Origin: Marsupella aquatica | Lineage: Eukaryota; Plantae; Marchantiophyta | Assembly (NCBI GenBank): GCA_973895155.1 | Contig: OZ316897.1 | Span: 2,111,312 to 2,175,311, forward strand | Direction of reading: 5' to 3' | Length of the DNA: 64,000 bases | Part shown: piece after piece, positions 5,172 to 39,669 of the stretch | How the letters are laid out: every line of letters begins with the position of its first letter | Position numbering within the stretch: the stretch's first letter is position 1 | The notes under the pieces: generated by a model | Told to the model about the DNA's origin: nothing | What the model saw: the letters and a program-made list of their open reading frames with translations, nothing else | The model's database searches: none | Translations under genes and position numbers: made by a program

Positions 5172-5341
5172 GAGTACATTGCTGACAGATATGCAAGTTA
5201 AATATACCACAAGTTAATGCGCTGAGTACATTGCTGACAGATATGCAAGTTAAATATACCACAAGTTAATGCGCTGAGTACATTGCTGACAGATATGCAA
5301 GTTAAATATTCCACAAGTTAATGCGCTGAGTACATTGCTGA
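5172..5341. repeat. 52-bp minisatellite, three full copies plus a fourth interrupted by the large transposon
   Basis: Unit GAGTACATTGCTGACAGATATGCAAGTTAAATATACCACAAGTTAATGCGCT starts at 5172, 5224, 5276 and 5328. The fourth copy breaks after TGCTGA (5341) and resumes at 29269. Confidence 0.95.
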
Positions 5342-5367
5342 TACGGTGTTCGAAATGTTGCGGGGAG
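5342..5367 (+). repeat. Left terminal inverted repeat
   Basis: TACGGTGTTCGAAATGTTGCGGGGAG; the reverse complement of 29243-29268 is TACGGTGTTTGAAATGTTGCGGGGAG (one mismatch). Confidence 0.95.
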
Positions 5368-7259: not shown

Positions 7260-10200
7260 TTATAACTTGCCGTAGGCGGTGTTGAAACTAGCCATGACCA
7301 ACTTGGAGTGCATCACTTCCACATTTGGATATGCAGGAATATCAATTTGTTTAGAACAGGTGGATGCAATAGGCAAAGAGCTCGAAGGTCGACTAGGGCT
7401 AAAATTCACATGACATATTGTACCTGCATTGTATTTCTCATCTGTAATAAACCTATATAATCTATAGGTTTCAACACCAGAAAATTGACCAATTGCTTCT
7501 TGAAATAAGTCTTTCAATGCTGGTGGAAAATCTATTGAATATCTGACCCTTGACAAAAACTCTCTATTTGTGATTCCTTGTTGCGCACTGAAAAATGCTT
7601 GCATGGCTTTCACAGAGACGTCTTTAAATGTACTTGTCAACACAAGCTTCTTTTCAGCCTCATTAATGAAGGGAGATGCCATCACAGTCTTCGCCAATGA
7701 GAAGAATCCGTCATGAAGTAGTGCACCAACCATGCTGCAAGCTCCAAATAGAGTCTCATATATGATATCTGCATACAGTTTTGTAGTTGCTTTCTGAAAT
7801 GCTTCAGTTGACCAGTTTGGGTCAAGTGTTACAACTCTGCAATAATATTCAGGCATTATATCCTCCATGCTGTCAATGAGACCCTCTCTCGATTCTTCAA
7901 GAGCATTAATCAAAGACTGCATGAAACCATACCTGCAATAAAAAATTAGTTTGATCATTACCTATAAAATTAAGATCACAGTATAAAATGAGAAGACAAT
8001 AATATCATAGAAATAATGTATAACAAAAAAGTGCACGGTTCCCACTAGGTACATTTACATACCATGTTGGTCGAACAGCTCGAAAATCTTCTATATAAAT
8101 TGATCGTTTTGTTTTTTCTTGTTGCACTTGCATGTAAATATCTTCACGGGAGGGACATTTACCCATGGCATGAGCAATTGTGGCCATTGTGATTGGACGA
8201 TGAACTTGTTTCTTTTTCAATATGAGAAGAAACATGAGTTGACCAACAAGTTGAACCTGATGGAATATGACAAGTAAAAACCTAGTTAAAATCAATAACA
8301 TTAAAAAAATTGAAGCAATGATATAAACCACTGAAACAGTCTGGAACACTTCAATTGAATAATATTTTAAAAACTTTACATTGTTATTTATGACTTACAT
8401 CTTTCTTGGAGATTTATGTAAACTGTTTTTGGAATTAAGATGATGAAGCCCGCCACATCCCTCTGTGAAAACTGCATGGAATTCCTGCATTGCATAAATA
8501 TGTTAATTATGATTCAAGGTTGAATTGCATGACTAGTCCCCGGACTAGTCTTGAACAAAATTATTGATTCATGATCAAGAAAACTTACTGCACTTCCACT
8601 AAACAGAGTCTTCCAAGCCCCTGTCAACAATCGACTTGTGACACCCCCTGCATCTACAGTTTCAGATTCCTCCAGTGTTACTTCTCCACTATGTGTTGTG
8701 TAGATTAACTTTGCTGCAAAATCTCCAAATATCTCTTGTCTTCTCAAGGCTTCTTGGCACATCTTTTGAATAGCAGTTAACTCATCACCGTCATAAAACT
8801 GCACAGACAAAATAAAGCTATTTAGATGTATAAACTTAAATGCAAAATGACATTAAATACAACAAGGCTATAGATAAGTATGAACATTTTCAAGACTGGG
8901 TTTCTTTTGTTTCTACATTACCTGAATTCGAATTTGTGGAACCTGCCTATAGAGTTTCCGAAAGTGAGAAAGTCCAATGTCAGAAATCTGATGGACCCTT
9001 AACAAGTATTTTGTCCTTTCAATTTCTTTTTTGGCTTCAATGTACATATTTTCACAACTTGTAAGCGTCGGTTCTTCAAGCTGACATTTTCCAATCCATT
9101 CAATGTATTCGTCGCGCAGAGAGATAATGCGGGCTTCTGAAAATTTCCCTTTCCCGTATGATGGAGTAAGCAAATAATCTCTGAAATAATGCTCAACAAT
9201 CCACAGTATGTTGTTAAATTCAACAATGAAAACTATTCACTTTAAATTTACAAAAATCATAATTTTAATGGAATGCATTCAGCTCACTGCATCTGATGAA
9301 AATGAACACTTAAATAAACATGTCAACCATTAATTACCTGAAGATTTGTAATGATCTGTCCAAATCGTTTTGAACAAACTCAGGAACAAGATCGGGTATG
9401 AGTTTTTGCAATTGTTCCCACATGTGCCACCTTGGAATGGCTGCTGCCTCAAAATAGTATCCAAAGTCATACTTGGTATACGAACTTAGGCCTTCTAAAC
9501 CATTTAACACTGGTGTAACAAAATCTTCCAGCATTGCATCTGATAATCCCAATTTTGCTTCTCTTCGATGTTGAAGGAATTCCAGATCTGCACAAGCAAC
9601 TGTCGCATCCATTTTATTGCGTTCCTCTACTAAAACGGCATCAAAATTTTCCCAAAAGATTGCCATGGCTTGATTTGGTGCTTGATCCACAGGCAACTTT
9701 ATGTCTTTATCCAATTTTTGAAGCCGCTCTTGTGCTGCACAATACGCATCTAGCAGGGCTGACGTCTCTGTCTCACTTGTTATAAGATCGTCCTCAAATC
9801 GGTCATTCTCGGGTGTGCCTGTACAATCACAAAATAGTTCTAAAAATATTCAACCATCCACTCAAGCCTACATATTATAAGAATCAATCCAAACCCGAAT
9901 CAAAATCCTTAACTCTAAATCCTGAACCCTAATCAACACACAATTCTGACATTTTCACTTACCTCTTTGTAGTAATCTTGATTGTCTTTCAATAACCTCT
10001 TCATTTTCCAATATAATGGGACTATGAACAGTCCCTACAAGGCTTACTTCATTCTCATGTCTTGAAGATCCAAAGACTAGGGCTCCTTGTGCAGGTATAG
10101 CTTCGTTCAAAACACCTCTGGTTCTTGAAGTTTGAAATGAATGAGCTCGTAAAGGTAAAGTTGGCAGTAATAATGCACCTGTATCATGTTTCACAATTAC

Positions 10201-13200
10201 CCAACACATTAGGGTTGGATTGTCAGATTGCTTTCACTCACATAGCCACTCTGTACCCTTTTTAATATATATTATGATTTCATGGCAGCATTGTTAACCT
10301 ACTATCGCCTTACTGTAGACATCTTGAAAAGCCTTACATACTACAGTAAAGCATCTCAAGCTTGGTATCCAGATTGAGCTTCGGCCATAACTGTAACTCA
10401 AGACTTAGATATATAGAAACTTTACAAAAGTTGTATGAGGTCAGGCAAGGGAATCCACATGAAGAGACCAGAGCATCTAATGGAGAGCAATAGAGCAATA
10501 ATTAGCACGCTGAGAAAAGCAAAATAATGTCTTGAGAATTCCTTATACAAAAGTTGACCAAAAGACCAATGACTTAGTATGCCAATGATTTACCATTTAA
10601 TTACTCTACTCTCCTAAATGCAAGTGTACATTATGATCAGAACTGTGATGAGTGCAATATGATTTCATTTTACTCAGCAGAACTAAAGAATGTTTTTGCT
10701 TCAAAGCTTTGGCTGGCTGCACACAAGCCTATGATGCTAGACACTCCATTTGTTCCTCATACTAATCAGCGTTGATGGAAAATACCATGGCTGCTACGGT
10801 TTGAAGTGTGTACTAAGGGTCTTCCTCTTGAACTAAGAAAACATGTACAAACTTGCTTCAACACGCTTGCAATAAAAAACTCATTGGTCGGTAGTCGATC
10901 TTGAAGTGGCCAAACTTTCAAGATTCCCCAATGCTTTCATCAGTTAATTGTTTTGTTGCACTAAAATGCAAAAGAAGGAAACACCTGAATCAGGATTGGG
11001 GCTCATCCGGGGGCTCATCTTGCATACCACAAGTAAGCTTTGGAGCATCAATCACCCCACCTGTCTCTGCTCCATATCTACTGGAGTTTGTTTGGAATCA
11101 TGTCACCTATAACTCCAGGGTCATAGGAAGTGCTTTTCTCAAAATGGCCAACAACCAACCTTGATCAGCAGGGTCAGTGGATGTCAATTCGAGGGCTGCA
11201 TCCTGGGGCCATGATTACCTGGTAATGAGCATCAAGTATTCCACTTGCAGTGATTCCATCACAGTCACTAGGAGTTTGGTTCCAGTAAGGCTCATTCTGG
11301 AGTCAGGGCTGTAAGTGAGAGTAATATGGAGAGAAGAGGGCCATTGACCTGTTGGAGTGGATTGGATTGATAGGGTCATTCCACTGTAGTTTCAAAGAAA
11401 AAGCATCTCCAAAAATCTATTGGCAAGGTGTTGACAGATAAACAAAAGGACTGCCCACAACAAGGCAGACAAACAGAACACCACCAGAAGCGCACAACAA
11501 AAACCATGTTGGTCAAAAATTTAAAGGATGCGGTACAAAATGCACAACCAAGAAGAGCAATCATTTGCAGCCCATAGCCTCATTCAGAACATGCTTTCAT
11601 AGATCTTACATATGCATGTTGTGCAATACTAATTTCATACGTACACCTACAAACTAACCCCCACCCATGCTAACATGTAAGAAATTGAATAATTATTAAA
11701 CTAAAGTGATCTATGGCCAAGGAAACTCAAAGGATGCACGTACTTGAGTCACCATGGGGTGAAGACGAGCTGTCATTGGGCTGGGTTTGAAACTCAGAAG
11801 TCGAAGGGTTTCCCAATTGAGGTGACGAGCTCGTTAATGGAGATGACAAATTAGAGGATCTTCTTGACAGATTTTGCGGGGCTTCAAACCAGAACAATGC
11901 AATAAGCAATTAGATACCTAATTCGATCAATTACATAGAAGCTACACTATATAATCCATAAAGCTTCATGGTGTATTTTTCACATCAATGGAGCTAGAAA
12001 TGATTTACCTGTTACTCAATATTACTTGTGCATCGATCAAGACAAATGAAGTTGATATCCTTACCTGTCAAAGTTATTGTGGGGTCGTGCAAGTTTTCTG
12101 TCTCCTCAATCCCTTCAGACTCAGAAGCTGCAAAGCTCGAGTTTGAGCTCTCTCTTTGAGTGTTAGAATTCCATGACTGTGAAGGACTTTGGGCATGTTC
12201 TGTTTCATTTTCAAATGCCCGACGATGCTCTGTCGTTGGAGAATCTTCTGAATAGACAAAAGTTTCAATTAATATGCAAATCATATCCAAAGACTTGCTG
12301 GGAAAGAGCAGAAAAATGTCATAATCTAAGAATCTAGTAACAATGATGACAAAAATGTTTGCTTGCTTTACCTGGACGTGCAGTCGAGTGACCATGGATA
12401 TTTCGTCTGGTATCTCGTTTACGTCGACGTGTTCCTTGTGAAGGCACAATAATTGTTGCACCTGAACAACCAGCCGCCTCAACATGGTAATGTCTTATTT
12501 GTTGTGGCGTCATTTGACAAGAGGGGTCTGGAATGTATACTACTTTATCAAACCGAGACACGTTTCTCCATTCGGTGTCCCCCGATAGAAAATATGAATC
12601 TAGTGTTGCACCACCTAGTTTGTCCAGGTCGTCTCTGTGTTGCCCAACATTTGTCATTCTCAAAAAGCATCCTGATATGTCAGCGTAACCAGTATTTTGG
12701 GCCCATTCTTGAGATGCCACAATTTCCCGAATATGCCACTGAGCAGTATTTTCCCGGAATTGACCTCCATCATAGACACCACCCCAAGGCGTTGACCCAG
12801 GTAGACTAACATATATTGGAGGCCTGAATTTTTTCACTCTTCGCATGTAGCAACTCTGATTGCCTGTGTCCACTTGTTGTGCCTCTCAAATTTGTTGAGG
12901 ACAATATATAGCACGACTCACTGGTTTATCATAATTCCTTCGATTGCAAATTATTGGAGGAGGTCTTGCAATCATCTGTCTCCTTCCTCTGTTTGCCGCA
13001 CCTCCACCTCTGTTTCCTCCACCTCCACATCTATTTGATCCACGTCCAGATTCTCCTTCAGGTTGATAATTGTATTGGTGATACGAGGCTGGGAATGTTG
13101 GAAATTCATATAGTGGAAGTGTCACTGGCTCAGTAGTTTCCCGAGGACCCGATTGTGTACTAGTTCCTAGTGGGATCATCCTCGAATTTCTGTTGTATCC

Positions 13201-13251
13201 TTGGACAGGGTTTCTCTGACAAGGATCTCGACTATCAGTAGGTTCATCCAT
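7260..13251 (-). pseudogene. Multi-exon HECT-domain E3 ubiquitin ligase gene inside the transposon, with at least one in-frame stop
   Basis: HECT N-lobe motif ETVDAGGVTSRLLTGAWKTLF (ORF 8514-8810). C-lobe LYRFIT...LPIASTC(S)KQIDIPAY...KLVMA...AYGKL*, with catalytic Cys codon at 7356-7358 and an aromatic residue at -4 from the end. GT-AG junctions link several ORF pieces in frame (12372/12247, 12065/11881, ~9962/9819, ~9339/9181, ~8922/8798, ~8063/7932). In-frame TGA at 12886-12888. Exons between ~10200 and 11700 and around 8260-8590 are not resolved. Confidence 0.8.
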
Positions 13252-14208: not shown

Positions 14209-14980
14209 TTGTCATTCAATGCACCTCGATTCTCCCCCACATCGGCAAATACAGAATGCTCTCTCCCCATTTTTGGGTCCCGCTTCAGTTTCAGGCCAGC
14301 CCCATTTTTGGGTCCCCGTTCAGTCTTGAGAAGGGCACACCGGCACAGATTCTGGAGGAGAATCTAATGCTCGATTGTTTTAACTAGGCTATAATAACTG
14401 AATGTAGTCGGGTGGCCGAGGGAGGGAGGCGCAGGGCTGGCCGTGGCAGGGTTCGTGGCAAGTGGTGAGGCAGGCAAGGGCGCTGGGGCTCGCCGTGGCA
14501 GAAAGGAAGGAGGGCGGCATGTGGGCTGGCCGGGGCCGTCGTGAGTGGTGAGGCAGGCGAGGGCGCTGGGGCTCGCCGTGGCAGAAAGGAAGGAGAGCGG
14601 CGTGCGGGCTGGCCGTGGCAGGAAGGAGGGAGGTAGCCGGGTGGCCGAGGGAGGGAGGGGACTCAGGCGGCCAAGGGAGAGGGGCAGTCGTGCGGCCAAG
14701 GAGGAAGGGCGCAGGGCTGGCCGTGGCAGGAAGGAGGGAGGAAGGTAGTCACGGCCGAGGGAGGGAGAGACTCAACCGGGAGTCGGTAGTCCCGCGCATT
14801 CAGGGAGACGAGTCCCTGAATTGTCATTCAATGCACCTCGATTCTCCCCCATAGCCCACCGGAATACTCTCTCCATTGTTGTGTCTCACTTTCAAGCCAA
14901 CCCCATTTTTGGGTCCCAGTTCAGTTTTGAGGAGGGCACAGATTTTTGATTGAGGAGTTCTAATGTTTGATGGTTTAACT
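14209..14980. repeat. Two ~170-bp direct repeats flanking a GC-rich island of short repeats
   Basis: TTGTCATTCAATGCACCTCGATTCTCCCCCA...CCCCATTTTTGGGTCCC..TTCAGT..TGAG.AGGGCACA...CTAATG..TTTAACT at ~14209-14385 and ~14821-14980. Between them GGCCGTGGCAG / GAAGGA(A)GGAGGG motifs recur. Confidence 0.75.
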
Positions 14981-17356
14981 TATTCACAAATAATGTAAAA
15001 CTATAATATTAATTTTAAAAATATCAATATATTTAATAAAAATATATAATTATTATAAAATATTAAATGGTAATGAGCATGGAGAATTGACGCATAGAAC
15101 TAGTGTGTGACCTAGTGGTATTGGAGGTCAGTTGAGACTAAGACGTGGCGTGTTCAAGGCACACGATGGGCAACTTTTCTTTTCTTTGATTGAGGGCATG
15201 GAAAGGAATGAACTTTGGAGGGGGCGGGGGTGTCTCATTGTATTTGAAAATGAAAATGGTAAATGAGATATATATGGTTCAAGTAGTTTGGAGATAGCAA
15301 AAATAACAAAGGAAACACCCATGAGAGCCAAGGAGATAAATTAACCTCTTTTGTTAATTTCCTATACCTGCCCATTGTTGTGAGGTGCCAATCATGTTCC
15401 TGGTGGGTAGTTGCTTTCAGTTTTAGGAAGAATCCAACAAAAGAGGTTAGAAGTCAAAAGGCAAACAATATTAGAGGTGGTGTTGACAAGAGAAGAAAAG
15501 CCTTGTGCAACAAGCTGAGAAACCAGTAAGACAAACGAAAGCCCCTATGAAAAAGGCACAAAACCAACCCAGCAGACGGCCCCTATGAAGTCCAAAAGTG
15601 TGTGGTAGAGAAGACAACAGGGCCAGGAGTGGTAAGTGTGCTCCAATTGACAGGTTTTGAAAGTTTGCAAGGAATTGGTGCAAGCATGGGTCTGAATTCT
15701 TTGAGTGTCTTGACAAATGTGTCAAGCACAACACCTTTGGTACACTTGTATTCCAGGGTAGCCAACTTAGACTATTTCCAACCTTGTATGTAGAAAAGAT
15801 ATGTGATTGAGTGATTAATTGTAGGGCGGTAGACTGCCGTTGGCTTCTAGGTTTTCTATTGATTTGAAAACAAATTTCATGAATAAAGTTTTGTTTCTTA
15901 TACAATAAGATGTGTGCTTACCATAAATGGTTTAGGAGATAAATGGTTTTTTTATGTGATCATGTCTCCTCAACTTTTTTGTTGCTGCTATATGGCGCAT
16001 CCTTGGTTCATATCCCCAAGTCCAATTTTTTTGGACATTATTTACGGACCCCCATGGGAAGTTCCTTCCAAAATCCCTGGCACCATGTTGAGCCACATCA
16101 GCAGGAATGGCCACAAATAAGAAAATCTAGATGTGAAAGAAGAACAAAACCTGATGGTTCGTGTTTGTGACAAGGCAAAAAAAACTGTCAATCCTGGTAA
16201 CTGTAAAAATGAGAAAAAAAACTGAAGAGTAAAGTTGAAACAAACAAAGAATGAGGTAAAGAGTACTTAACACTTGGAAGTTCTAGAATTGATATATCAG
16301 TGTTTTGCATTAAATGTTAGATTTTTTCTAATTTCAAAAGATTTTTAAATAAACACTGCTAGAGGAAGTAGAAACAAACTGTTGGGCTTCCAAGATTTTG
16401 TAATAAGTATTTGGTGAAGTAACAAATTGTTGGGTTTCCAAAGTTTTGTAATAAATATTTGATAAAGTAAAAACAAACTGTTGGGTTTCCAAGCACTGGT
16501 AACCGCAATAAGTTGTAGATGGTACGTTTTAGATGGCTTGAGATGACAAAGGGAATGGCTTGATGACTTGAGATAACATGACAAAGCTAATGGCTACCCT
16601 TATACTCTTAGATCTGGCAATTTACCCCTCACCCAAGCCAGTTTTTGGTGAATTTAGTAGGAATATTAAATCCCTCCTGCAAGTTACAAACAAATCCTGC
16701 TACTTACATTATTTGGCAATTCCTCCTACTAATAGATGGAGTAGACAAATGTCTTGCAGATTGGGAAACCCTTAAACCACAACTCCAGATATATATACCT
16801 GTAGCTCTCATTTCCACTATGAATGAAGGGATGGGCAAGAGTGTTCTTTCATTGATCCAATTTGTTGAATGTATTCAAGTTTATCTGTCTCAGGGGGTCC
16901 TCATACTAATTTAATTTTTATGCCTGGCTCTGATGGGTGTCTCCTTTGTTATTTTTTCTATCTCCAAATTACTTGAACCCCTCATATATATCTCATTTGC
17001 CATTTCCATTTTCAAATACAATTAGACACCCCGGCCCCCTCTAACGTTCATTCTTTTCCATGCCCTCAATCAAAGGAAAGAAAAGTTGCCTGTCATGTGC
17101 CTTGAACACGTCACCCCCTAGTCTCAACTGAGCTTCAATACCACTAGGTCACACACTAGTTCTATGCGTCAATTCTCCATGCTCATTACCATTGAATATT
17201 TTAGAATTATTTTATATTTTATCTTAAAAAATATATTGATATTTTTAAAATTGATATTATAGTTTTATGTCATTTTTGAATAAGTTAAAAACGTCAAGCA
17301 TTAGAACTCCTCAAAAATCTGTGCCCTCCTCAAAACTGAAGGGGGACCCAAAAATG
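14904..17356. repeat. Long imperfect inverted repeat (~440-bp arms 14904-15344 and 16911-17356, ~1.6-kb spacer); possible nested foldback or non-autonomous element
   Basis: For example GGTAATGAGCATGGAGAATTGACGCATAGAACTAGTGTGTGACCTAGTGGTATTG (~15069-15123) is the exact reverse complement of ~17136-17190. Similarity extends over the whole arms. No TSD found. Confidence 0.85.
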
Positions 17357-19554
17357 TGGGGATTGGGACACAGGGCACATCTGGGAAATTGATAAATTCA
17401 GGCAAACATGAAGACAAACATTGATTTTTGACATTGGCAAGGGACTTTGTAGCTGAGGTGAACAGTTCTGTTGACAGACATGACATGTCTTATGCACAAA
17501 ATTCAATGATAAACACCAGTTTGTCTCTAAATGTCAATGGTTTATAGTCTGAAAATCAACTTACACCTGAGCTTCAGAATATCATAATGAAATATCGAGT
17601 GAAGTTTTAAAGGAGTTGAGTTGGCCTTGACATTGATGCTACTGTTGAAGTGGCTCCTGATATTGGTGACCCAGGTGAAGAGCCAGCTCAACCCTCTTCT
17701 CTTGGGGCTGTACAATGTCTTGCAAGGATGAGACACCCGGGACAGATTGTAGGAGAGTGAAAAAAATGTTAGTTTGTAGCTTATGTGAGACAACATCTAC
17801 TATTCATAGTTGATTAAAGTGAATCAAAGAGATCTTGTTTGCTCAATGTGTTTCAAGAGTACCCCAAACTGCAAATGTGAGGAGGAGTTATAAATTTCTG
17901 AAGTTTACTCAATATTTGAGTAGTATATGAAAGGAGTTATAAGTTTCTGAAGTTTTCTCAATGCTTGAATGAGTAGTAAGTGTTGTAAATTGTAATCAAA
18001 TATTGTGCACATTTTTAGCTTTTTTATAAGCAAATTTTAACTATTGTCCATTCTTTGTTTTTAACTTTAAGTATGTGTGACACTATTTGACTTGTGACCA
18101 CAATTAGTGTCATACTATATTAGTGTCACACACCCTAATTACCGTCACTTACCTCAAATATAACCTCACAGTAATTAGAGTCTGTGAGACTACATACTGT
18201 AAAGAGTGTAGTTACCCTTGGAAATATTATAATGGATTAACTAGTAAAACATGCAAGCTGGGAAGCAAGGAAGCAATGGGGAACGATTGGCTAAAATGAC
18301 ACTAAGAGAAAATATATCTTTTTGAATTATAAGTGACCTGGCAATACTTCAGTTGTTAGTGGCCTATAGGTGTCATGCTAATTACAAGAAATTTAATCCC
18401 AAGATTTTTATAGATTACATAAAGACATGTTAGTGACTAGTCAAAAACTGAATCATGTAAATGTTAGTGACTAGTCAAAAAGTCACTCATGTGACCATGG
18501 TAGGTGAGTCCTAAGGAAGTCATATAAATAGCAGAAATAGACTTTAGTTGCAAGACATCTGTATACCTTACACCCATTTCATGCAAACTAATTTAGACTA
18601 CACATTTTTTCATGTACACTTGTGAAATAGTGTTTGAATTATCTGTATACCAACACTATATCTAATCACAACATTTAGTGTTATATCCATCGCTTTTCTA
18701 GGTCCACAGGCATAACAAAGTTACAACTTGAGAATTCCTCCAAGCACTATTCTTCCTCCTTCAACTTCTTCCCTCCTTTTGTATTTCAAACTTGTCTTTC
18801 TCAATGAATGTATTGCTCACTATGTTAGGGTACAAGGCCTTGGGGGCAGTTTCATTGTTTTTTCACCAGAGCTAATTAATCTATCAGCCATGTAACATCC
18901 TAAGGCTAGATAGTGTACCAGGGCTCAAAAGGAAAGTCTAGAATTATTTCATGGTCGCTTGTTTATTCAGAATTTATGCAGGTCTTTAGTGGAGTCTTCT
19001 CTATCTAATCTATCTAGTTCACGTGCTTTTGATTCAAGGAAAGGTCCATCCAAAATGTTCCTTTCTTAATGCCCTTTGCAAATTTTCCATTTGTATTTTT
19101 CAGGACATTCTTGGAGCATAATGCCCACCACAAGATCCGGATCACCTCTTGAGTAAGATTGTCCATTACTTTCACTAAATCAAGAAAAAATAAAATCTCT
19201 CAAGCCTTTCAATATAATAAGGTTTTATTTGCCAAACCATTAGGGAAACAACCCCTCCAAATGCAAGCTAAAGCTCTCCTTTTTTGGTCATGTTCCATAA
19301 TGCCAACTAAACATGACTTTACTACATACTTCTAAAGTCTATTTTTTGCCTTCAATATTGTGTTTGGTTTTTCATGGTTTACTCTATTTTAATGATCCAT
19401 GCTCCATATTTTTCAATATGGATGCTAAGGTCAGTTGTTCTTGAATATTTTCCAGAAGAGTTGACATTATTTGCTCAATAATCTTGGAAACTTTTAGTCA
19501 ATTTTATCAGTGCACATGTAGTCGTATAAAATTCAAGAGTCGTAGTGTTTCTTA

Positions 19555-20940: not shown

Positions 20941-21784
20941 CATGGCGTTTGACAAGACCACCACCATTGTTGATGTGGATATTCTATTCACAATCTTCAA
21001 CGGAGGAAGATTTGTAAGTGAAGTAAGGCTTTCTGAATTTAGCTCTTTGGATTAGGTTGTGTTATTTCAGTTTGTTTGTCCATGAGCTCATTATGCCCTG
21101 TCTGTTACAAGTCACTTTTACAGATGCAGCGTTGACTCTAAAATCAAGTCTCACATTGCTAAGTTCGTGCACTGGATGACACCCTACCTGATACACCGTA
21201 TCTTCAATTTTTAGGTATGTTACATACTACCATAGGAGAAATTTTGCGATTCACATTTTGTATGGTGGGCTAATGTTAGCTTTGTTGCTGTTTGCCGTCC
21301 AACATAATTTTTGAACTAGGATGACAAGAATCCATTCTAAATTTAAGCTTTTTCCTAGGTTGTCTTTCTATTGCACATAGTTTGACAAATCATTGAGAAT
21401 TTAAATCATTTTACAGGTTACTCAATATGGAAGGACTGAAAGACAAAATAAAAAAGAAGAAGAAGTGAGACTCCAATTCTAAAGGTAAGATATTTTCTCA
21501 CTACTAATATACTTTGAGATCAGAAAATGTTTGGAATATATTTGAAACCAGTACACATTTTGTGAGGCCAATTCATTGTCAGGTGAATATATTGATAGTT
21601 GACCTATTGGGGGGGCGTGACTTCCCGTATAGTGGAAGAAACCTCATTATCCGGTGGCCGATACAGTCTATATTCTATGGCTTTGTTTTGTGTCCGAAAT
21701 GTTTAGCATATTTGATACTCATCGTAGGTTTATATTTGTTATTTTTACTGCAAATTTAAGATGAAACTCTTTTTTCTTTTATAG

Positions 21785-23124
21785 GGCAAAAAAACAGTGA
21801 AGGTATCTTCCGAGAGGTTCTCTGCAACATCTCTTTATTTCTGCGAAATCATCAAGCTTGCTCAAAAAGCTGGTGGGAAAGCAGGACATTTTCATACAAA
21901 AATTCTATGTAAGTGGTTGTTGGGCGAATACTATCTTTTCGATTATGGAGTACAGATATTATCTGAGGGAAACCTAAAAGGAAATCAGTCAACCTTTTTT
22001 GATGGTTTTCACAGTTTAAGAAGAGATGAAAGTTGGATTGCTTGGTTTGATGAAAAAGAATGGAGTAGCATCAATCATATGATAATGAATCGTTACAATC
22101 TATCATCTGTTGGGAGAGGCTTATCAGATCGGATACAGAAGTTCCGAACTGATCCAGACATGTATCTAAGAAGTAAGAAAGATCATTACCAGAAATTTGG
22201 AAAATCCCGTATAAAGTTTACAAATTTCACCAAGAAATCTTCCGATTTTGTTGGTAGATTTTCCTCCAGCTATTTGATTGAGGAAGATTTGGAAACACCT
22301 TGGGCAAATCGAATTATAGTCTGGAGACCGATGATCGAGCCTTTTTACAAGATGAATATTTCATCAAGAGTGGAGATTTGGATAGATGGTGATGAAATCA
22401 TTGGAGGTCGGATGAAAGGAGGTGTTCCAGAGAAAGATAGATCTTTTGTTCAGTTGTTTGTGGAAGAAATATGGAATGATAAATATACAATGAAGAGGTC
22501 AAATACACGATCTGCATTGAAAAATGTCATGAGGGCAATTGGCCCATTAGTGAACTGGCGAGAAGGGAAAGGTAATCATTTTGTGAGCTTCTACCGTAAC
22601 AAGTTGAAGATATCACAAACACAGGATCCTACTGTGGTTCAGTTAGAATTGCTCTATGAGCAATGTGCACATCGATTACTGTTTGAAATTATTTTTATTC
22701 TTTCTGTGAACACTTCTGGCCAGTGGTGGAGAGTTTTATTGAGATTATGCCTCCAATGATGGAACTTAGCAGTGAGCTTTTGGCTTGTTTTTCAAAGCCT
22801 GAACTCATGAAAAAAGCCATTCTTGCATATCCTTTATTCATCACAAAGGACTATTGCAATGAAGTTCATACAGATGTAGATGAAAGCGAGTTTACAATGT
22901 TCATGGCATGTAATCCATCGAATGAAAGTAGAGGTGGAGATTTAGTGATGCTAAAATATGGAATTAAAATTCCAATTTTAGATGGAGATTTGTTTTTTGT
23001 TCGGGGTCAAGATCCTCATGCTACATCGTATAGAAGTCCACCAATGAAACCAGTATATGTAGTTGGAATTGCCGTAAACCAAAAACTTGGCAATGCTTAT
23101 GAGTTTCAAGGTGAAAGTAATTAA
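21785..23124 (+). pseudogene. TET/JBP-like (Tet-like) Fe(II) dioxygenase gene with a 1-nt frameshift near 22752; 5' exons unresolved
   Basis: Acceptor TTTTATAG at 21784 opens in frame with ORF 21797-22759. Overlapping ORF 22723-23124 reads FITKDYCNEVHTDVD...RGGDLVMLKYGIKIPILDGDLFFVRGQDPHAT...VVGIAVNQKL, giving HxD (22867-22875), GG-x-L, GD and a distal His (23017-23019) with double-stranded beta-helix spacing. Adding one C in CTCCAATG fuses the two frames (RLCLPMMEL). Confidence 0.7.
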
Positions 23125-23560
23125 ATAAATTTTGTGATACACTGAGATTAGCTATGCGGGTTTTCTTTTGGTCTATTTTTTTGTTTATTATTATGGTGGA
23201 TTTGGTTATAATGGTGTACTATATATCTTGATGCTAAAGTTTTTAGTTTATCTTCTTGTTATAGAATTTTTGTTCATTGGTGCTTGTGGCTGTAATATGA
23301 CTTGTGAGTTTTTAATAGGTTCAAGAAAGCCAATGAAAATTTTAAAAATGTCATTTGCTTCCAAATTGGGAATCATCAACAATTATTTATGAACAGACAG
23401 CGTTGGGGCCAAGCTTACAAGAGCAATAGTCAATTGCTGTAGAAAACAAAAATTGAATGACTACTGTTATTTGTATTTGTATATGGTTGCAGGTGTTAAA
23501 ATTGTTAGTTGATGAAACTGTGGAGTATAATCTATACTCAACCCACGCTGGACAATCAAT

Positions 23561-25232
23561 ATGAATGATCCAGATTTTCAACAGTATACAGATGTAAAAA
23601 GAGCTCTCGACCTAGGGTACACTATGAATGAATGTGCAGATGCACTTGGTGTACATAGAGTGACTCTATGGAAATGCCTCAAAAACTTTGATATTGAGCA
23701 TAGAATATATCCCCGATATACTTTAGAAAATGTTTGCTCTCTTATTACCGAGATTGTACCAATCCATGGATATGCTGAAGATTGGGGAATACGTTTTGTT
23801 AGAGCACGTTTAAAAAGGGCTGGTTATAAAATCTCACTAGCACTTGTCAGAAATGCTTTGGACACATTACTTCCTGGTGTACTTGAAGGAAGGGCACGAA
23901 GATGCATCATAAGGAGATTTTATGATGTAATTGAGCCAATGCATCTGTGGCATATGGATTGTAAGTAGAACATCTATGTCTCTTCTAAATTTTTCCTGCT
24001 TTTATATTGAAGTTAACTTTAGAATAGATCCTCAATACTAATAGATTGTTTGGAAATTGAATGCAGCGTATGATAAATTGACGCAATGGGGATTCGGAAT
24101 TCATGGTGCAATTGATGGGGCTAGACACTTTGTTCCATGGATGCATGTGGCATTGAACAAGAAAGCGCAGACTCTATATGTGGGATATAAGACAGCCATA
24201 CTTAGATTTGGTCATCCATTGATGATTCGTTCTGATTATGCAACAGAACATGTTTTGGTAAGAAGAAACCTTGAAAGAGCAAGACCAAGTACAAATTGTT
24301 TTCGCATGGGGTCTTCTGTTCATAATCAGGTAATGTTTCTGATTAACAAGAACATATAGAGTGGTTCATTTCATATTTCATGTCATCAATTGCAGCTTGG
24401 AAATTCTGTAAATTTGAAATCAATTTTGTGCAGGTACTTATATTTGTATCCTATCATGTATGTTTTGGCAGAGAATTGAGGCATTTTGGAACTACATGAA
24501 ACAAAAAGGAACTAATCACTTCAAGAAGACTTTATATGACTTATCATGTGTGGAAGGATTTTTACAAATTGATATCCCACTTCATAGATATTGTATGGTT
24601 ACTGTGATTCTTCCTTTACTACAAGAGGCTGTAAATGATGTGGTTTTAACATGGAATGCACATACTGTGAGAGCTGTGCAGACTGGAGGTATGTTGAGAC
24701 CATCACATATTCCAGAACTTGCATTTCAATCACGAGAAAGAGAAGCTAGAATTATTCAGCCTCCACCTTATGCCGAAGAAGCTCAGGTGGATATCGAACA
24801 AGAAGATGACATCATCGATCCAATGGGAATTGATTATTGGAATCACAACAATGATCGTGGAAACTTTGAAGATCGCATAAACGATTTGAATGATGAAGTA
24901 AGCATTGTTTTGTATTATTATTAATGTTCATGTGAATTATGAAATGATGATGTAAGAAATACTTTTGTTTATATGCCCTTATTCATGTTTTATTTCTTTT
25001 GCAGAATCTACAATACATTCGTGATATTGCATATGAAAGGAACCAAGTGACAGTCACAACTGCAAAAGACAAATTGCGAATGCATCTTCTTCTTTCTATA
25101 GAGTGTCAAAATAGTATGGACGCTTCATTGGACTTGGAGGACTATGTACAAAATGAATTAGGGCTACCTAATTTATCAGATGGTAGATTATGGGCCTTAA
25201 GATCCTTGCAACAAACATTACAGATTATATGA
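23561..25232 (+). CDS. IS3EU-type DDE transposase (integrase core domain), 4 exons, 438 aa, intact
   Basis: Exons 23561-23960, 24067-24329, 24472-24897 and 25005-25232 with GT-AG introns total 1317 nt and stay open. N-terminal HTH (TMNECADALGVHRVTLWK), GIRFVRARL, then WHMDSYDKLTQWGFGIHGAIDG ... PLMIRSDYATEH ... GSSVHNQRIEAFW supplying the D, D, E triad. Confidence 0.92.
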
Positions 25233-25379
25233 CTGACACAATATGTGAGGTAATGTAATAGTTTACCAGTGACACAAACACTTCTTCTTGAGGCTTTAGC
25301 AATATTCGAAGAAATTATTTTCTAGTCTATTGGCTTAAGAGATACTTGTTCATGTTTTGAGCCCATAATTTTGCTCTCA

Positions 25380-28340
25380 TCCTAGTATTTAACCTAGCTT
25401 TGGACCCTTGTCTGAAAATGCCAATAATTAAATCCTTGATTTTTTTTCATAAATTTGCATCCAAGACTAAGCATGCCTGGTATTTTGATTCCAAATCCAC
25501 TCTCACAATGTTGGTTTGAAATTTCCTTGGCGAGTTGTGGTGGGGCAAGTTGATTCAAGTCCTTTATATTTTGTTATAATGGTCCTCCTATTTACCCTAA
25601 CTTTGGACCCTAACTAGCTTGTCTCAAAAAAATGACAAGAACAAATCCTCAATATTTTGTTGTGTATTTATAGCATAGACTGAGCCCAATATTGTGATTC
25701 AAAATCCACTTACACTTTGAAGGTTGAATCTTTCCTAATGGTGGTGGTGGAGCAAGTTTGTGATCTACCTTTGTATTTTTTGTCATGGTAGTCCCATTTA
25801 CCCTACCTTTGGACCCTTGACTTGGACAATGTCAAGAAATAAATCTTCATTAATGTAATGTGTCTTTACACCCTAGACTAAGCCCAGGACCAAGCTTGAC
25901 CTGGTGATTCCAACTTTGCTCTCACTTTGTGGGTTCCATCTTTCTTTGCTCACTTGTTTGGTGGAGCTAGTTTCTTTATCGTCCTAAGTTGTATTTTTGT
26001 TATTTACTCTAAGTGACCCTAGCTTTAGACCCAACCTAGCCTGAAGAAACCAGATCCTCATAACTTGTTTATGTTGTACACCCTCCATTTACAATGATTG
26101 TTGTCATTGGACAAACTCTCACTTTGTTGGTTTCACCTTTTTTAAGTCACTTCTGTAGTGGAGCAAGAGTATTCAATTCATTTCTATATTTTGCTCTAGG
26201 AGAGCTTATTGTCCTTTAGGCCCTTGTCTCAAAATGCCAAGCGTCAAATCCTCATAATTTTGTCACAAGTTCACACCCTGGACTAAGCATGGTATTTTCA
26301 TTCATAATCTGCCTGTCACATTGTTGGTTTGACATTTTCTTGGTCAGTTGTGTGGTGGATCAAGTTTGTTCTCATCCTTTGTATTTTGGATATGATCTTC
26401 TCATTTACCCTACCTTTAGACCTTGATTGAGCAAAATCCCAAGATACAAATCCCCATTATTTTGTTGAGTATTTACACCCTTAGTAGACTGAGCCTGGCT
26501 TGGCTCATTCCAAATCCACTCTCACTTTGCTGGTTCAGCATTTTCTTGGCCAGTTATGTGGTGCACCAAGTAGGTCCAAGTCCTTTGTATACTTGTCATG
26601 GTCTTCCCATTTAACCCTAACTTTGACCGTTATTTTAAGAAAATGCCAAGACACAAATCCTCAAAATTTATTTGTGCTTTTCACCATATGCTTAGACTAA
26701 TTATATTGTGATCAGATATCTGCTCACTTTGTTGGTTTCATTTTTCCTTAGCCATTTGTGTGAGGGAGCATGTTTGTTCAACTCCTTTGTAATTTGGTTA
26801 TGATGCTCTCATTTACCCTAGCTTTGGAACCTTGTTTCAAGTAAATGTCAAAATACAAATCCACCTAGTTTCTCCATTTATTTACACCCTTGATTGAGCC
26901 TGGTCCTGTGATTTCAAATCCACTCTCATTTTGCTGGTTGCAGATTTTCTTGCTAAGTCATGGAATGGAGTGAGTTTGTTCAAGTCCTTGTTAATTGTGT
27001 TATAGTTCTCCTATAATTTACCCTATTTGACTTTGGACTCTTGTCAGATTAGGGAAATGCCAAAACACAAATGTTCATTATTTGTTTTTGTATTTAAACC
27101 TTAGGCTGAGCCTCATATTGTGAATCAAAATTGTTGATTTTCATTTTTGTTCTTTAGTCAATTGTGTGGGGGAACAAGTTTGTTCTTATCCTTTGTATTA
27201 TTTTTCATTTTGATCTTCCCATTTACCCTAGCTTTGGAGCCTTGTTAGAAATGTCAAGATACAAATTCACATAATTTCTCCATTTATTTACACCTTTGAT
27301 TGAATCTGGTTTGGTGATCTCAAACCCACTTTTATTTTGCTGGTTGCACATTTTCTTGGGCAGTTGTGGGATGGAGCTCGCTCATTTAAGTCCTTGGTAT
27401 TTGTGTTATGGTTCTCCCATTTACCCTACTTGACTTTGGGCCTTTGTCATAGAAAAATGCCAAGAAACAAATGCTCATGGTTTTTTTTTTGCATTTACAC
27501 CTCATGCTGAGCCTCATAATGTGAATCAAAATCAGTTCTCCCTTCGTTGATTTCATTTTTCCTTAGTTAGCTATGTGAGGGAGCAAGTTTGTTCACGTTC
27601 TTTGTATTTTGGTAATGATCCTTCCATTTACCCCACTTAACTTTGGAGCCTTGTCTAAGAAAAATGCCAAGAAACAAATTCACATGATTTATTTGTGTAT
27701 TTACCCCTAAGGCTAAAGCCTGATATTGTGATTTGAAATGTGCTCTCACTTTATTGGTTTCATTTTTAGTTATTTTTAGTTATGTAGGGGAGAAAGTCAT
27801 TTGTATTTTGGTTAATATGAGCTTCCCATTTACCTTAGCTTTGGATCTTTCTTTCAAAAAAATGTCAAGAAGCAAATTAACATAACTTTTTACACCCTAG
27901 ATTTAGTGGGCCTTGGTGATTCCAAATTTGCTCCCACTTTGCTGTCAGTTTGACATTTCTTTGGCCAATTGTGTGGTGGTGCAGGTCAATTCAAGTCCTT
28001 TGCATTTTTGTTGTGCTCTTCCCATTTACCCTAGCTGTGGACCATTGTCTTAATAAAATGCTGAGAAACAAATCGTCATATTTTCTTTGTGTATTTACAC
28101 CATAGAGCGATACCCAAATGTGTTCAAGTTGTTTGTATTTCTAAACAGTGTTGGTATTTACTCTAGTCTGGACCCCTTTGAAAGAAATTGCCAAATAATA
28201 AATGCTGATAGTTTCTTTGTGTATTTTTTAAGAGACACAGCATGACCGACCTTGTGATCGCAAATTGGTCCTGACTTTGGTGGTTCTACCTTTCCTTGAA
28301 CTGTTGTTGTTGTGGAGCAAGTATGTTGAAGCCTTAGTTA
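25380..28340. repeat. Degenerate tandem array, ~200-206-bp unit, about 14 copies, CpG-poor
   Basis: Anchor TTTACCCTA.CTTTGGA recurs at ~25389, 25591, 25797, 26015, 26404, 26611, 26812, 27017, 27222, 27420, 27627, 27829 and 28025. Each is followed by AAATG(C/T)CAAG..ACAAAT and GGAGCAAGTTTGTTC motifs. Confidence 0.88.
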
Positions 28341-29242: not shown

Positions 29243-29268
29243 CTCCCCGCAACATTTCAAACACCGTA
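29243..29268 (-). repeat. Right terminal inverted repeat
   Basis: CTCCCCGCAACATTTCAAACACCGTA, immediately followed by the TSD TGCTGA. Confidence 0.95.
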
Positions 29269-29318
29269 TGCTGACAGATATGCAAGTTAAATATACCACA
29301 AGTTAATGTGCTCAGTAC
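29269..29318. repeat. Continuation of the interrupted 52-bp minisatellite copy
   Basis: TGCTGACAGATATGCAAGTTAAATATACCACAAGTTAATGTGCTCAGTAC completes the unit broken at 5341. Confidence 0.95.
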
Positions 29319-30612
29319 ACCAAAACATAAACCATTACTTTATATTTATGATCTACAAACTTTGAATGGAAACCATAACATAAACCAATACTTTATATAC
29401 ATGATCTACAAACCACATCTATATTCTTGATCTATAAACTAACTGATTTGACCTACATGTGTCTTGGTTTATGTTCTGGTTGTATGGTTGACTTAGATTT
29501 AATGCGCGGGTCTGACAAATGCCTAGATGTCCTTCCTTTGTGATCATTATGATTATCTGATCCAGAGAACAGGGAAAAGAAATTCAAGCACATAAAACTC
29601 CATACCTTTATGACTACAAGACTTTTCCCCATGTCATTTTTCTAGTAGACAATTATTTAGCTTCTAAACAATGTGAATTCCCTTAAAGAAAGTGGTGGAA
29701 CTCTCATAATGACTTTGACACATAAGTCGCTCATCACCATAACTTCATAATTAGTCAAAACTTAGATGTAGTTTAAAGGGGAGGGGTTGGCATTATCTTG
29801 AAGTGCTTGTTCCTCTACCTCCATGGATTTTTCTCAAATTTATTGGACGAGTAAGCTTAGGGTTTAAGTATCCCTCGTGTATGAAAAATTAATTTAATAT
29901 AATTTGGATATAAGGATAAGACAACATATTCTAACAAAGGATGTGTAAGATTGAAATATAAATATAGACCTAGAGAGGGAGTCTAAAAAAACAAAAATTA
30001 AAAACATTAAGAGGGGGTACTTATAATATCAAGTTCAATGATACAAAGGATTCACCGTGTCTAAATAAATTGAAACCATCATACATATATAAATATCAAC
30101 AAGACAAAGTGACCTTGGGCTCCCAAACAAGGTAACACCAGAATTTATCCCAATAGAGATTGACAAAAATGACCCTTGTTACCCCGCTCATTGCTCATTA
30201 ATTGATTTCAGCAGCCAAATTTATATCGCCAAGCCTTGAAGTAGGGTAGTGCACTCAGTAATTCTAAAGGCTTCCCTATGAGTTTCCTACTAGTTCAAGG
30301 TGTAGATGTTAGTCTTGACAAGGCTGGATGAAAAGAGTGGCCCTCATTTGCTAACAGAACATATTTTATTTTGTAGCCAACTCCCAAGCCAACTCGAGTG
30401 GCTTGGCTCAATGGTTAGCACACTTGGGTGGACCTGGGTTTCGCATGGCTAAGCCCTGATTCTTACCTGTGGGTTGTCCCAGCCTCCTGGCATTCCTCTT
30501 ATGGATGGATGAATGGACTGAATTGTAGTGCTGGTAGTGCTTTCACTAGCTTGTTCACAATCCATAGGCATCAAAGAGGGAGAGATGACAATTATCCTAG
30601 TATTATTAGATG

Positions 30613-31922: not shown

Positions 31923-34825
31923 GCAGATGTTTGCGGGCCAATTAACCCACCGAGCGGACCATTCCGCTACTTTATGGTATTAATCGATGCATCAACTAAA
32001 TGGTCAAATGTGACACTGCTTTCAACGAGGAACATGGTTATACCTTGTATTTTGGTGCAATCCTGCGCGTGAAAGCACAATTCCCCGACCACCCCATTAA
32101 GACACTAAGGGTAGACAATGCAGGGGAATTCACATCCAAAACATTTGATGACTTTTGCACATCACTTGGCATAGACATACAATATCCTGTACCTCACGTG
32201 CATTTTCAGAACGGATTAGCTGAAGCGGTCATTAAACGCCTTCAGTTAATTGCACGCCCATTACTAATGCAGTCAAAACTCCCCGTCTCAGCATGGGGAC
32301 ACGCCATATTACAGGCTAATGCATTAATCCAATACCGCCCATCGGCCTTTAATACCTATAGCCCATACCAAATTGCTAATGGTATTAAACCTGACCTATC
32401 ACATCTTCGTTCATTTGGATGTCAAGTAATGGTCCCCATTACTCCACCCAAACGAACCAAGATGGGACCCCAACGATAGTTGGGGATATACATCGGATTC
32501 GACTCTCCGTCCATAATCCGATATATAGAGCCTACAACTGGCGATGTTTTTAAATCTAGATTCCTAGATTGCCATTTTGACGAACATGTTTATCCACAGT
32601 TAGTAACCCCTGAACACCCACAACCACCTTTGGAGTGGAAAAGACACTCGCCATTTTGGCAAGACCTTAGAACGAATCAAGGGGAGAAAGAAGTTCAAAG
32701 AATTCTGCAACTCCACAAGATTGTGGAAGAACTTCCTGACGCTTTCGTTGACACATCACAACTTACCCGCTCACATATTCCAGCTGCGAGAGCATCTGTC
32801 CGCATCGAATTATCAAATGAGCCAGCAAGTACATCCCAACCTCGTGCAAAACGAGGTAGACCCTTGGGATCAAAAGATAAACAACCACGAAGGCGTGGTT
32901 CATCTATACCACCTTCACCTGATGTCGATCATACCGAATCCACAACTCATGAAGAAATTTCTATCCACTACGCACACACCGGTACGATGTGGGATAGAAA
33001 TACTACTTCCATAGATGATGCTTTTGCATTAATGGTGGCAACACATATCACTGATGATACACCCGAACCAATATCTATCTTAGAATGCCAAAACAGACCA
33101 TATTGGCCCGAATGGCAAAAAGCTATAAATGGAGAATTAGATTCCCTACTCAGCAGACACACTTTTGGCCCAGTCGAGCCAACACCGCAAGACGTACACC
33201 TAATTGGCTACAAGTGGACATTTGTCCGAAAAAGAAATGATAAAGGCCAAGTTGTACGCTACAAAGCACGTCTGGTAGGGAAAGGATTTACACAACAATC
33301 GGGAATTCATTACGATGAAACCTATTCACCGGTTATGGATAGCACAACATTCCGATACCTTATCGGATTTGCCATTTTCCATCAATTACAGATGCGACAA
33401 CTAGATGTCGCAACCGCATATCTATATGGAACTTTAGACACTTGTCTATACATGCGATCACCCCCCGAGTTGGAGCAACGTCGCCGAGCTTTGGCTCAAG
33501 GCGCCAAATCGCATATTCCATATTTACATAAGATTATAACACAATTATCTCAAGTTACACCTCATGTGTCATCTACACATGTAACTCATAATAACGACAC
33601 TGCTGTGTCAACCATACGGAATACTCGCCGCGGACTAGCTATCCGCGTGTTGAAGGCATTATATGGCCTGAAACAAAGTGGCAGAGTATGGTATCAAAGA
33701 TTTACTGATGAAATGATTGCCATGGGTTTTTCCCATGATGCCATTACACCATGTTTATTTATTAAACATGTGGATGATGAATATGTCATCGTTTCTATTT
33801 ATGTTGATGACTTAAATATATTTGGGACACCCCAATTGACAGAAGATACTATTACTAGTCTTAAATCCACATTTGAGATGAAAGACCTTGGACATACAAA
33901 CTTTTGCTTAGGCTTACAACTAGAGATCCTACCCACTGGCATGATGCTCCATCAGACAACACAAACGGAAAAGATCCTAAAACAGTTCAATATGAACCTA
34001 GCACACCCATTGACGTTACCAATGGTTGTACGTTCATTAGAAAACAACACTGATGTTTTTCGCAAGCGCGAAGAACATGAACCCATATTAGGACCAGAAA
34101 CTCCATATCTTTCTGCGATAGGAGCATTAATGTACCTAGCAAATCAGACCAGATCAGACATTGCATTTGCAGTTAACTTACTAGCCAGACATAGTGCAAC
34201 TCCCACAGCCAGACACTGGAACGGAGTTAAGCACGTATTTAGATATCTACGTGGAACCATCGATACCGGGTTATTTTACCCATTCGGTGCAAACCATGAG
34301 CTCATAGGATACGCGGATGCCGGATATCTCTCCGACACTGATACCGCAAAATCCCAAACTGGATATGTTTTTACCATAGGGGGTACCGCTTTTTCTTGGA
34401 AAAGCGCGAAACAGACCCTAACAGCAACCTCATCGAATCACTCAGAAATATTAGCTCTACATGAGGCTAGTCGTGAAGCCGTTTGGTTACGATCCTTTAT
34501 AAACCACATCAACACCAAATGCGGCCTACCACCACTAACGAAGCCTACTAACATTTTTGAGGATAACGCAGCATGTATACAGCAGATCACAAAAGGATTC
34601 ATCAAAGGCAATCGCGTGAAGCATATAGCTCCGAAGTTTTTCTACACCCACGAGTTACATGGAAAAGAGATCAATATTTTGCAGATTTCAAGTGCAGACA
34701 ACTGTGCGGATCTCTTCACCAAATCACTATCGCCATTGGTTCATCACCGACACTGCCAGGCGATTGGACTACGGAGCGTGCGACGCATGATGACCATGGA
34801 GGCTGCTACTCCACATGATACTTGA
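31923..34825 (+). pseudogene. Copia pol remnant (integrase, reverse transcriptase, RNase H) with a frameshift near 32040-32060 and an in-frame TAG at 32477-32479
   Basis: Integrase: ADVCGPINPPSGPFRYFMVLIDAS, RVDNAGEF, QNGLAE. RT: YKARLV, ALYGLKQSGRVW, YVDD. RNase H: GYADAG, FEDNAAC, KHIAPKFF, ADLFTK. Confidence 0.93.
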
Positions 34826-38793: not shown

Positions 38794-39669
38794 CTAGAAC
38801 TGACCACCCCGCCTATAATCTGCAGCAGCGATCTCCGAATCCACGTTGGCAACGTGAGTTTGACTGACTCTCTTGGCTACGGATATCATGTCCATGACCA
38901 CACTCGGGTCCAGCCCAGTCCCTCCACGCTTTGTAATACCAAGAATTGAGCCCTTTCTGTTGAGCGATACTGACACAGCTGCAGTCATTTGTGACTCTTC
39001 CTCTGTAGTAGCGTCAATAATGTAGTGCTTCCCCACCTTGGTCAAGGTAATGACAAGAGGAACCCTAGAAGTATCAAGCGGGAGGAACTCCTCGGGGTTA
39101 TCGCTGAGCTCAAAATCTTCATCGTCAGGTGCTGTCCCACCTGTAGTCTCCACCTTTGGCAGTCCAGAGTTGGCCAATGCTGCCTTCACTGCAATGGACA
39201 AGGCATCAAGCAAATTCCCATCCGAGCTCACAACCAGCCCATCAATGGACAACACCCAGCACACCTTCCCCTCCAGCACACACAATGTGCCCAGGTCAAT
39301 AGCTGAGCCTACCCCGCTCGGACCACCCAAATAGCTCCTCTGCAGAGCCCTAGACAACTCCAACGATAGCTCCTCTCCTCCTCTGCCCTCAAAGTCTGGT
39401 GTGGCAGTAGCGGAGCATTCCACATTGATCTCTATACGACCATGGTTTGGCCTACCAGCTGGTGGTGTTCCTAGCTCTGCCTTCATGCTGGCTATCACAT
39501 CAGTAAAGCCAAGTCGGACCCTGGCGGACCCATTTGCCTGGGGAATGATTCCTGTGTCGATAGAGAAAGACCGAAAATGATGACGGCCTCTGCCATCTCC
39601 CCGAAGGTCGACTGCAATTCCTGCTGCTATGTAGCTCTTCTCCGACGATGACAGATCCACCACCGTCAT
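38794..39669 (-). CDS. RRP42: Exosome complex component RRP42 (EXOSC7), RNase PH fold, single coding exon
   Basis: 291 aa: LSSSEKSYI..GI..DLRGDGR..FR, IPQANGSARVRLG.TDVIASMKAELG, CVLEGKVCWVLSIDGLVVSSDGNLLDA, IIDATTEEE. Confidence 0.93.
   Translation of the reverse strand: MTVVDLSSSEKSYIAAGIAVDLRGDGRGRHHFRSFSIDTGIIPQANGSARVRLGFTDVIASMKAELGTPPAGRPNHGRIEINVECSATATPDFEGRGGEELSLELSRALQRSYLGGPSGVGSAIDLGTLCVLEGKVCWVLSIDGLVVSSDGNLLDALSIAVKAALANSGLPKVETTGGTAPDDEDFELSDNPEEFLPLDTSRVPLVITLTKVGKHYIIDATTEEESQMTAAVSVSLNRKGSILGITKRGGTGLDPSVVMDMISVAKRVSQTHVANVDSEIAAADYRRGGQF

Follow-up and report, generated by a model that had tools for sequence, protein, structure and literature searches.

An IS3EU/GingerRoot transposon of the leafy liverwort Marsupella aquatica probably carries, as cargo, a divergent Fe(II) dioxygenase of the TET/JBP type, which in its intact form would modify a methylated base and so may aid the element in escaping silencing. 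The transposon lies in the window, the whole 64,000-nucleotide stretch of DNA that was analyzed. The product of the cargo gene, about 465 aa in length, would begin with about 150 aa of helices at the N-terminus and continue with the dioxygenase domain. By analogy with TET2, NgTET1, CcTet, and CMD1, the intact protein would flip a methylated DNA base, with 5mC the likeliest, into its iron site and then oxidize or derivatize it. Such a modification would make the element less subject to silencing through 5mC, an analogy drawn with fungal TET-bearing transposons only. The preliminary description of this locus had proposed a transposon-borne protein of TET/JBP fold, without the usual arginine, in a land plant. 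These parts of it stand, while its three functional readings (a non-canonical 5mC-modifying enzyme, a catalytically dead reader of methylated DNA, and a decayed copy) survive only in part.

The element and its surroundings

The element is an IS3EU/GingerRoot cut-and-paste transposon, as established by its TIRs, target-site duplication (TSD), empty site, and rva_4 DDE transposase. It occupies positions 5342-29268 (23,927 bp), and its 26-bp TIRs have the termini TACGG..CCGTA. The insertion target was a 52-bp satellite, present at 5172-5341 and 29269-29320 as three perfect or near-perfect units. Intact satellite units read ...GAGTACATTGCTGACAGATATGC..., which is the exact empty site. That the TET-like gene is transposon-borne is confirmed by the TIRs, 6-bp TSD, and empty site that enclose it. 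Short, deep contigs in three sequencing runs suggest that the element belongs to a multi-copy family, contig depth not being equal to copy number. The coordinates of the features are given in Table 1.

Table 1. Features of the transposon and of its two adjacent genes, with positions in the window
Feature	Position	Strand	Remarks
Left TSD TGCTGA	5336..5341	.	Same hexamer at right end
Left TIR TACGGTGTTCGAAATGTTGCGGGGAG	5342..5367	+	Only two inverted matches in the window; 0 expected by chance
187-bp tandem array, 6.8 copies, 93% identity	19562..20825	.	Upstream of TET-like gene
Probable exon 1, TET-like gene	21427..21484	+	ATG plus 19 codons; GTAAGA donor at 21485; predicted splicing
Exon 2 (large), TET-like gene	21785..23124	+	Preceded by acceptor ttttatAG
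Transposase exon 1	23561..23960	+	HTH region and first catalytic Asp (WHMD); GT-AG intron, phases fit
Transposase exon 2	24067..24329	+	rva_4 integrase core, second Asp (RSDYATE); PF24764, E 4.3e-14
Transposase exon 3	24472..24897	+	rva_4 core, catalytic Glu (RIEAFW); PF24764, E 2.1e-7
Transposase exon 4 with stop	25005..25232	+	From sequence reading
Degenerate array, repeats of about 200-207 bp	25366..28309	.	Downstream of transposase gene; families D3-D9 and D11
Right TIR	29243..29268	-	25/26 identical to left TIR
Right TSD TGCTGA	29269..29274	.	Matches left TSD

The TET-like gene stands 436 bp upstream of a DDE transposase gene of the rva_4 type that has four exons, is apparently intact, and lies on the same strand. 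This makes exact the earlier remark that the two genes are close neighbors in one orientation, with the TET-like gene first. Under the predicted splicing, the four transposase exons total 1317 nt, equal to 438 codons and a stop, with consistent phases. The predicted product is an integrase-like DDE transposase with D, D, and E motifs, an N-terminal HTH, and no HHCC zinc finger. Logan contigs from four public runs were aligned to 21400-25300. The indels that this comparison lists between copies in the transposase gene are all intronic. In run X5, a 941-nt contig with about 96% identity extends from the 3' end of the TET-like gene across the spacer and transposase exon 1. The adjacency of TET-like gene and transposase thus belongs to the family, beyond this copy.

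Several further features were observed within the element. The TET-transposase pair lies between two different tandem arrays, for which binding sites or satellite seeding are candidate roles. A second large cargo gene is located at 7260-13251 on the minus strand, and its ORFs encode a HECT ubiquitin-ligase domain (PF00632; 7260-7955, E 5.2e-9). There is also a foldback-like structure at 14262-17362, with 238-nt inverted arms that are 91% complementary and more arm pieces around them, and this structure is a candidate nested insertion. G-rich repeats of 25-83 bp come before it at 14400-14730 (GC skew +0.24).

The neighboring genes include those of the host. An intronless gene for the exosome subunit RRP42 (38794-39669, minus strand) is 76% identical to that of Marchantia polymorpha and 72% identical to that of Riccia, and its 91% identity to the leafy liverwort Calypogeia fissa bears out the land-plant host. 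Other genes in the window encode a two-pore K+ channel of plant type with EF hands (2688-3842, minus strand), the Rab3GAP catalytic subunit (50145-52397, plus strand), and a Ty1/copia integrase-RT (32000-34825, plus strand).

The cargo gene and its two lesions

The listing of open reading frames presents the TET-like gene as two plus-strand ORFs in different frames, 21797-22759 and 22723-23124. Position 21785 is preceded by a polypyrimidine tract and AG, and so resembles the start of an exon. The explanation of the frame change comes from P0001, a protein of 479 aa that is the sole close full-length relative in a set of 5.8 billion proteins. P0001 is an intact ORF from another organism, and its identity to the window is 48% across the first ORF and 59% across the final 143 residues. 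It runs uninterrupted across the region of the frame change, EQCSHRILLEIILVLFCEKFWPVV, where the window matches it in frame 1 through EIIFIL and in frame 2 from FCEHFWPVV. As P0001 is uninterrupted and the window is split between two frames, the window copy is therefore short of one base at 22701-22703. This 1-nt deletion in exon 2 falls in a run of T (T3 in the window, T4 in other copies), and a T is put in behind 22700 by all contigs covering the site in runs X1, X3, and X5, which derive from two organisms. A 59-nt GT-AG intron at 22665-22723 was considered as a cause of the frame change and ruled out, given the uninterrupted P0001 and the additional T at 22700 in other copies.

The second lesion is in the probable exon 1, where the window copy has an additional base near 21456 that shifts the frame. 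In runs X3 and X5, the contigs have one base fewer at 21456, and this places the ATG at 21427 in phase with exon 2. Judged from the sequence, the intact gene would be made up of 57 and 1341 nt, or 465 codons and a stop, with one 300-nt intron. Provided that the assembly is right at both short runs, the window copy is unable to make the protein. The reading of the gene as a decayed copy is thus accurate for the window copy, with its two frameshifts, but not for the family, of which in-frame versions exist in other runs.

Conserved motifs and relatives

The iron-binding triad HxD...H is present in the window copy. The proximal His (22867-22869) and the Asp at 22873-22875 form the HTD motif, and a further invariant Asp follows at 22879-22881. 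Beyond these come GGDL, DGD, and the distal His (23017-23019), so that the layout HTD...GGDL...GD...H given in the preliminary description is found with its motifs at the positions claimed. In the family alignment, the proximal His is kept in 26/26 relatives, the Asp at H+2 in 25/26, the Asp at H+4 in 26/26, and the distal His in 21/21. The relatives share 22-60% identity, pairwise values reaching down to 22-30%, and the metal ligands are nonetheless invariant.

Public protein sets contain few members of the family. With the C-terminal ORF as query, an exhaustive phmmer search returned 25 proteins out of 1.84 billion cluster representatives, and many of the 25 are fragments. Word-index homologue searches returned 1 and 2 proteins. 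One relative is from the amoebozoan Planoprotostelium fungivorum. This protein, P0023 (PRP78645.1, hypothetical protein; MDYQ01000212.1, 393-2173), is the sole named relative and sits at a contig end, with HSP70 and SIR2 genes as neighbors. No transposase is present in the 10 kb downstream of it, and none was found within the readable flanks of P0001 or of P0012, a relative on a Logan contig. The nearest ESM Atlas cluster to P0001 (score 0.95) is unnamed and has 97 members, mostly from Mucoromycota. Mucoromycote symbionts occur in liverworts, and transfer of the element between fungus and plant is conceivable.

Fold and TET/JBP membership

The two window pieces were searched separately, and the intact natural protein P0001 stands in for the full-length protein throughout this section. 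Pfam gave no TET model above its gathering score on either the window ORFs or P0001. Among 26 relatives there were sub-threshold matches to PF20515 in 6 (best 1.4e-3) and to PF12851 in 3 (best 2.9e-4), the Tet-like 2OG-Fe(II) oxygenase and Tet_JBP models, respectively. The proposed profile comparison with Tet_JBP thus gave no match at the Pfam cut-off and only weaker ones among relatives. PF20515 and PF12851 are also the nearest named clusters in the ESM Atlas. A profile of the family searched against the PDB matched CMD1 of Chlamydomonas alone, with an E-value of 5.6e-4 and a span from HxD to HGT. The residue numbers in this alignment agree with the published CMD1 ligands His345, Asp347, and His397 (PMC7854593). 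Single-sequence PDB searches gave only CMD1 for P0001 (E 0.48) and no match for P0023 and P0012.

An AF2 model of P0001 was made with the family alignment, in which both window pieces were included as rows. The model (pLDDT 77, pTM 0.76) is predicted to be a double-stranded beta-helix (DSBH). In a Foldseek search of the PDB, CcTet (2.6e-8), CMD1, NgTET1, and TET2 lead (to 2.3e-5), above generic 2-OG oxygenases. VIA-align places CMD1 at Z 16.9 (262 residues aligned, rmsd 3.9), followed by TET2 at 16.4, NgTET1 at 15.0, and CcTet at 14.3. The top 16 rows are all one of these four proteins (Z 13.7-16.9), and next is AlkBH3 at Z 12.1, with PHD2 at about 11.6. The TM-scores of the structural matches are modest, at 0.35-0.49. 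As modeled on its homologue P0001, the protein is structurally a TET/JBP member, and a very divergent one. The assignment to TET/JBP rather than to AlkB, prolyl hydroxylase, or a fold other than the DSBH is upheld by these best structural matches and by the retention of HxD...H among relatives.

The aligned part of the model begins at residues 166-172, and thus the real N-terminal extension is about 150-165 aa of predicted helices. When the N-terminal 165 aa were folded alone, the model was all-helical with a pLDDT of 59, a confidence too low for structural comparison. An extension of about 320 aa, as described earlier, is too long; only about 150-165 aa are helical, and the catalytic domain begins near residue 166 of P0001.

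The missing β-VIII arginine

TET2 and NgTET1 hold 2-OG via two arginines, and the one on the last DSBH strand, R1896 in TET2 and R289 in NgTET1, is located 15 and 10 residues past the distal His, respectively (PMC7854593). In CMD1, the corresponding Arg410 (+13) is directed away and Trp358 occupies the 2-OG site (PMC7854593). The C-terminal tail of the window protein reads ...KPVYVVGIAVNQ and contains no arginine, as had been noted for the last strand. By a mapping based on spacing and predicted secondary structure rather than residue-level superposition, positions +9 to +21 past the distal His are without a conserved arginine in the family (at most 2/19 relatives at any position), and at least 17 of the 19 have none there. 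The +13 position, that of CMD1 Arg410, is Tyr in 13/19, and the strand predicted as the last one (P0001 Y458-V462) starts there. Because no arginine is conserved at +9 to +21 across relatives, the loss is, on this alignment, an ancestral trait of the family and not decay in the window copy, which answers the question of ancestry raised earlier. The canonical β-VIII arginine is missing family-wide, and therefore the co-substrate site differs from those of TET2 and NgTET1.

Alternative explanations

The condition of the window copy can be read in two ways that compete with a functional cargo enzyme or bear on it. One is that the gene is dead, either as a pseudogene family or as an inert reader of methylated DNA carried by the transposon. 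Its two frameshifts fit with this, as do the fragmentary state of many database relatives and the RNA evidence: the TET-like locus was not found in any RNA run searched, and no expression data were found. Of the substitutions listed between copies, 8/13 are non-synonymous, which leaves constraint weak or unmeasured. Opposed to this are metal ligands that stay invariant at 22-60% identity, the in-frame form in runs X1, X3, and X5 from two organisms, and the intact 479-aa ORF of P0001. Moreover, only two of the indels listed between copies fall in the TET coding sequence, and both restore the frame. We consider it very unlikely that the gene is a dead passenger, and the catalytically dead reader of the preliminary description is itself unlikely in view of a metal triad that does not vary within the family. 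The other reading is that both frameshifts are assembly errors and that the window copy is intact and possibly active, which is a possibility but a doubtful one. Both lesions are in homopolymer or low-complexity runs (T3 vs T4 at 22701-22703 and an A/G-rich run at 21450-21465), and they stand in an element with 25/26 identical TIRs, a perfect TSD, and an open transposase gene. However, slippage mutations favor the same type of site, and the contigs differ from the window at other positions too, so that they represent other copies and are uninformative on this one.

A third alternative accepts the enzyme and concerns its chemistry. In this case the family would act like CMD1, with ascorbate or another co-substrate instead of 2-OG, and place an unusual modification on 5mC. 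The absence of arginine from +9 to +21 and the Tyr at +13 are in keeping with such a mechanism, and CMD1 is both the sole PDB profile match and the top structural match. Nevertheless, CMD1 and TET2 are tied in the structural comparison (Z 16.9 and 16.4), and the position aligned with CMD1 Trp358 holds a small residue, V, A, S, or C. In other 2-OG oxygenases, the C5 carboxylate is bound by residues on other strands. An arginine at distal His +5 is kept in 14/19 relatives and that of an F-x-R-G motif in 15/25, and from their sequence conservation either could be a substitute 2-OG binder. A CMD1-like co-substrate is unlikely. The combined proposal, that a land-plant transposon with an arginine-less TET/JBP relative uses a co-substrate other than 2-OG (ascorbate in CMD1), rewrites 5mC, and evades silencing, is quite unlikely. 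The explanation that we favor remains a divergent TET/JBP-type dioxygenase as transposon cargo, in frame in other copies.

Significance

By the general account, land plants clear 5mC through the DME/ROS1 glycosylases and are without TET enzymes, and no report of a TET/JBP gene from a bryophyte was found in the literature searched, the coverage of which was incomplete. Transposon-borne TET genes, those in IS3EU included, are known from fungi, and IS3EU/GingerRoot elements are known from non-seed plants. The arrangement of a TET gene beside an IS3EU transposase is so far described only in fungi. What is new is the combination in a land plant, together with a TET subfamily that is invisible to Pfam and the absence of the β-VIII arginine.

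A complete, recently inserted liverwort element that carries a TET-like gene extends to plants an idea from fungi, that transposon-borne TET serves to counter silencing. The element also provides a clonable candidate for the source of oxidized or hypermodified cytosines in bryophyte DNA. By defining an arginine-less TET subfamily, the analysis points to proteins that standard domain searches miss, and the IS3EU vehicle common to fungi and a liverwort raises the question of horizontal transfer. If an arginine-less enzyme does rewrite 5mC without 2-OG, this would be a new DNA modification for land plants. The weight of these points is limited by the broken window copy and by the putative nature of the protein's expression and activity.

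Comparison with known systems

The closest known arrangement is that of the fungal IS3EU families that carry TET genes. These have a 6-bp TSD and termini TAYGG..CCRTA (Kojima 2025, PMC12730594), and the TET gene and the transposase are read in one direction in three of the fungal IS3EU families (PMC12730594). Elements such as IS3EU-7_PSt of Puccinia (PMC12730594) resemble the liverwort element in their DDE IS3EU transposase, TSD length, and termini. They also share a TET/JBP cargo gene, which in some families precedes the transposase on the same strand, and a further large cargo gene. Their hosts are rust and truffle fungi, whereas the present host is a leafy liverwort, and the other cargo is an alpha-kinase in the fungal elements and HECT-like in the liverwort. 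Unlike the fungal TET domains, that of the liverwort is missed by Pfam and has no β-VIII arginine. The liverwort element further differs in its length of 24 kb, its two internal tandem arrays, and the putative spliceosomal introns in both genes.

The GingerRoot/IS3EU elements of non-seed plants have 6-bp TSDs and TA..TA termini (PMC10045372, PMC6839031), and those described by Cerbin et al. 2019 (PMC6839031) share these features and an integrase-related DDE transposase with the element described here. GingerRoot elements, which occur in clubmosses and moss among other hosts, reach sizes of up to 12.9 kb and frequently contain captured genes (PMC6839031). Their TIRs of 100-150 bp (PMC6839031) contrast with the TIRs of about 26 bp, accompanied by subterminal similarity, in the liverwort element. 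Term searches of Cerbin et al. 2019 (PMC6839031) found no TET/JBP cargo.

Among proteins, CMD1 of Chlamydomonas reinhardtii (PDB 7cy4-7cy8) is the best match in both sequence (E 5.6e-4) and structure (Z 16.9). CMD1 and the present family have in common the H-x-D-x-D motif, GGEF/GGDL, HGT, and the lack of a functional β-VIII arginine. Identity between the two is only about 13%, and CMD1 Trp358 is replaced by small residues and Arg410 by Tyr. CMD1 is a host gene, whereas the liverwort TET-like gene is transposon cargo. TET2, NgTET1, and CcTet share the HxD...H triad with the present family, as well as a DSBH that includes the same additional elements (Z 14-16). Arginines R1896 of TET2 and R289 of NgTET1 have no counterpart in the present family, and the conserved acidic residue is at H+4 instead of the H+5 of TET2, NgTET1, and CcTet. 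Compared with these three enzymes, the predicted helical N-terminal domain is specific to the present family.
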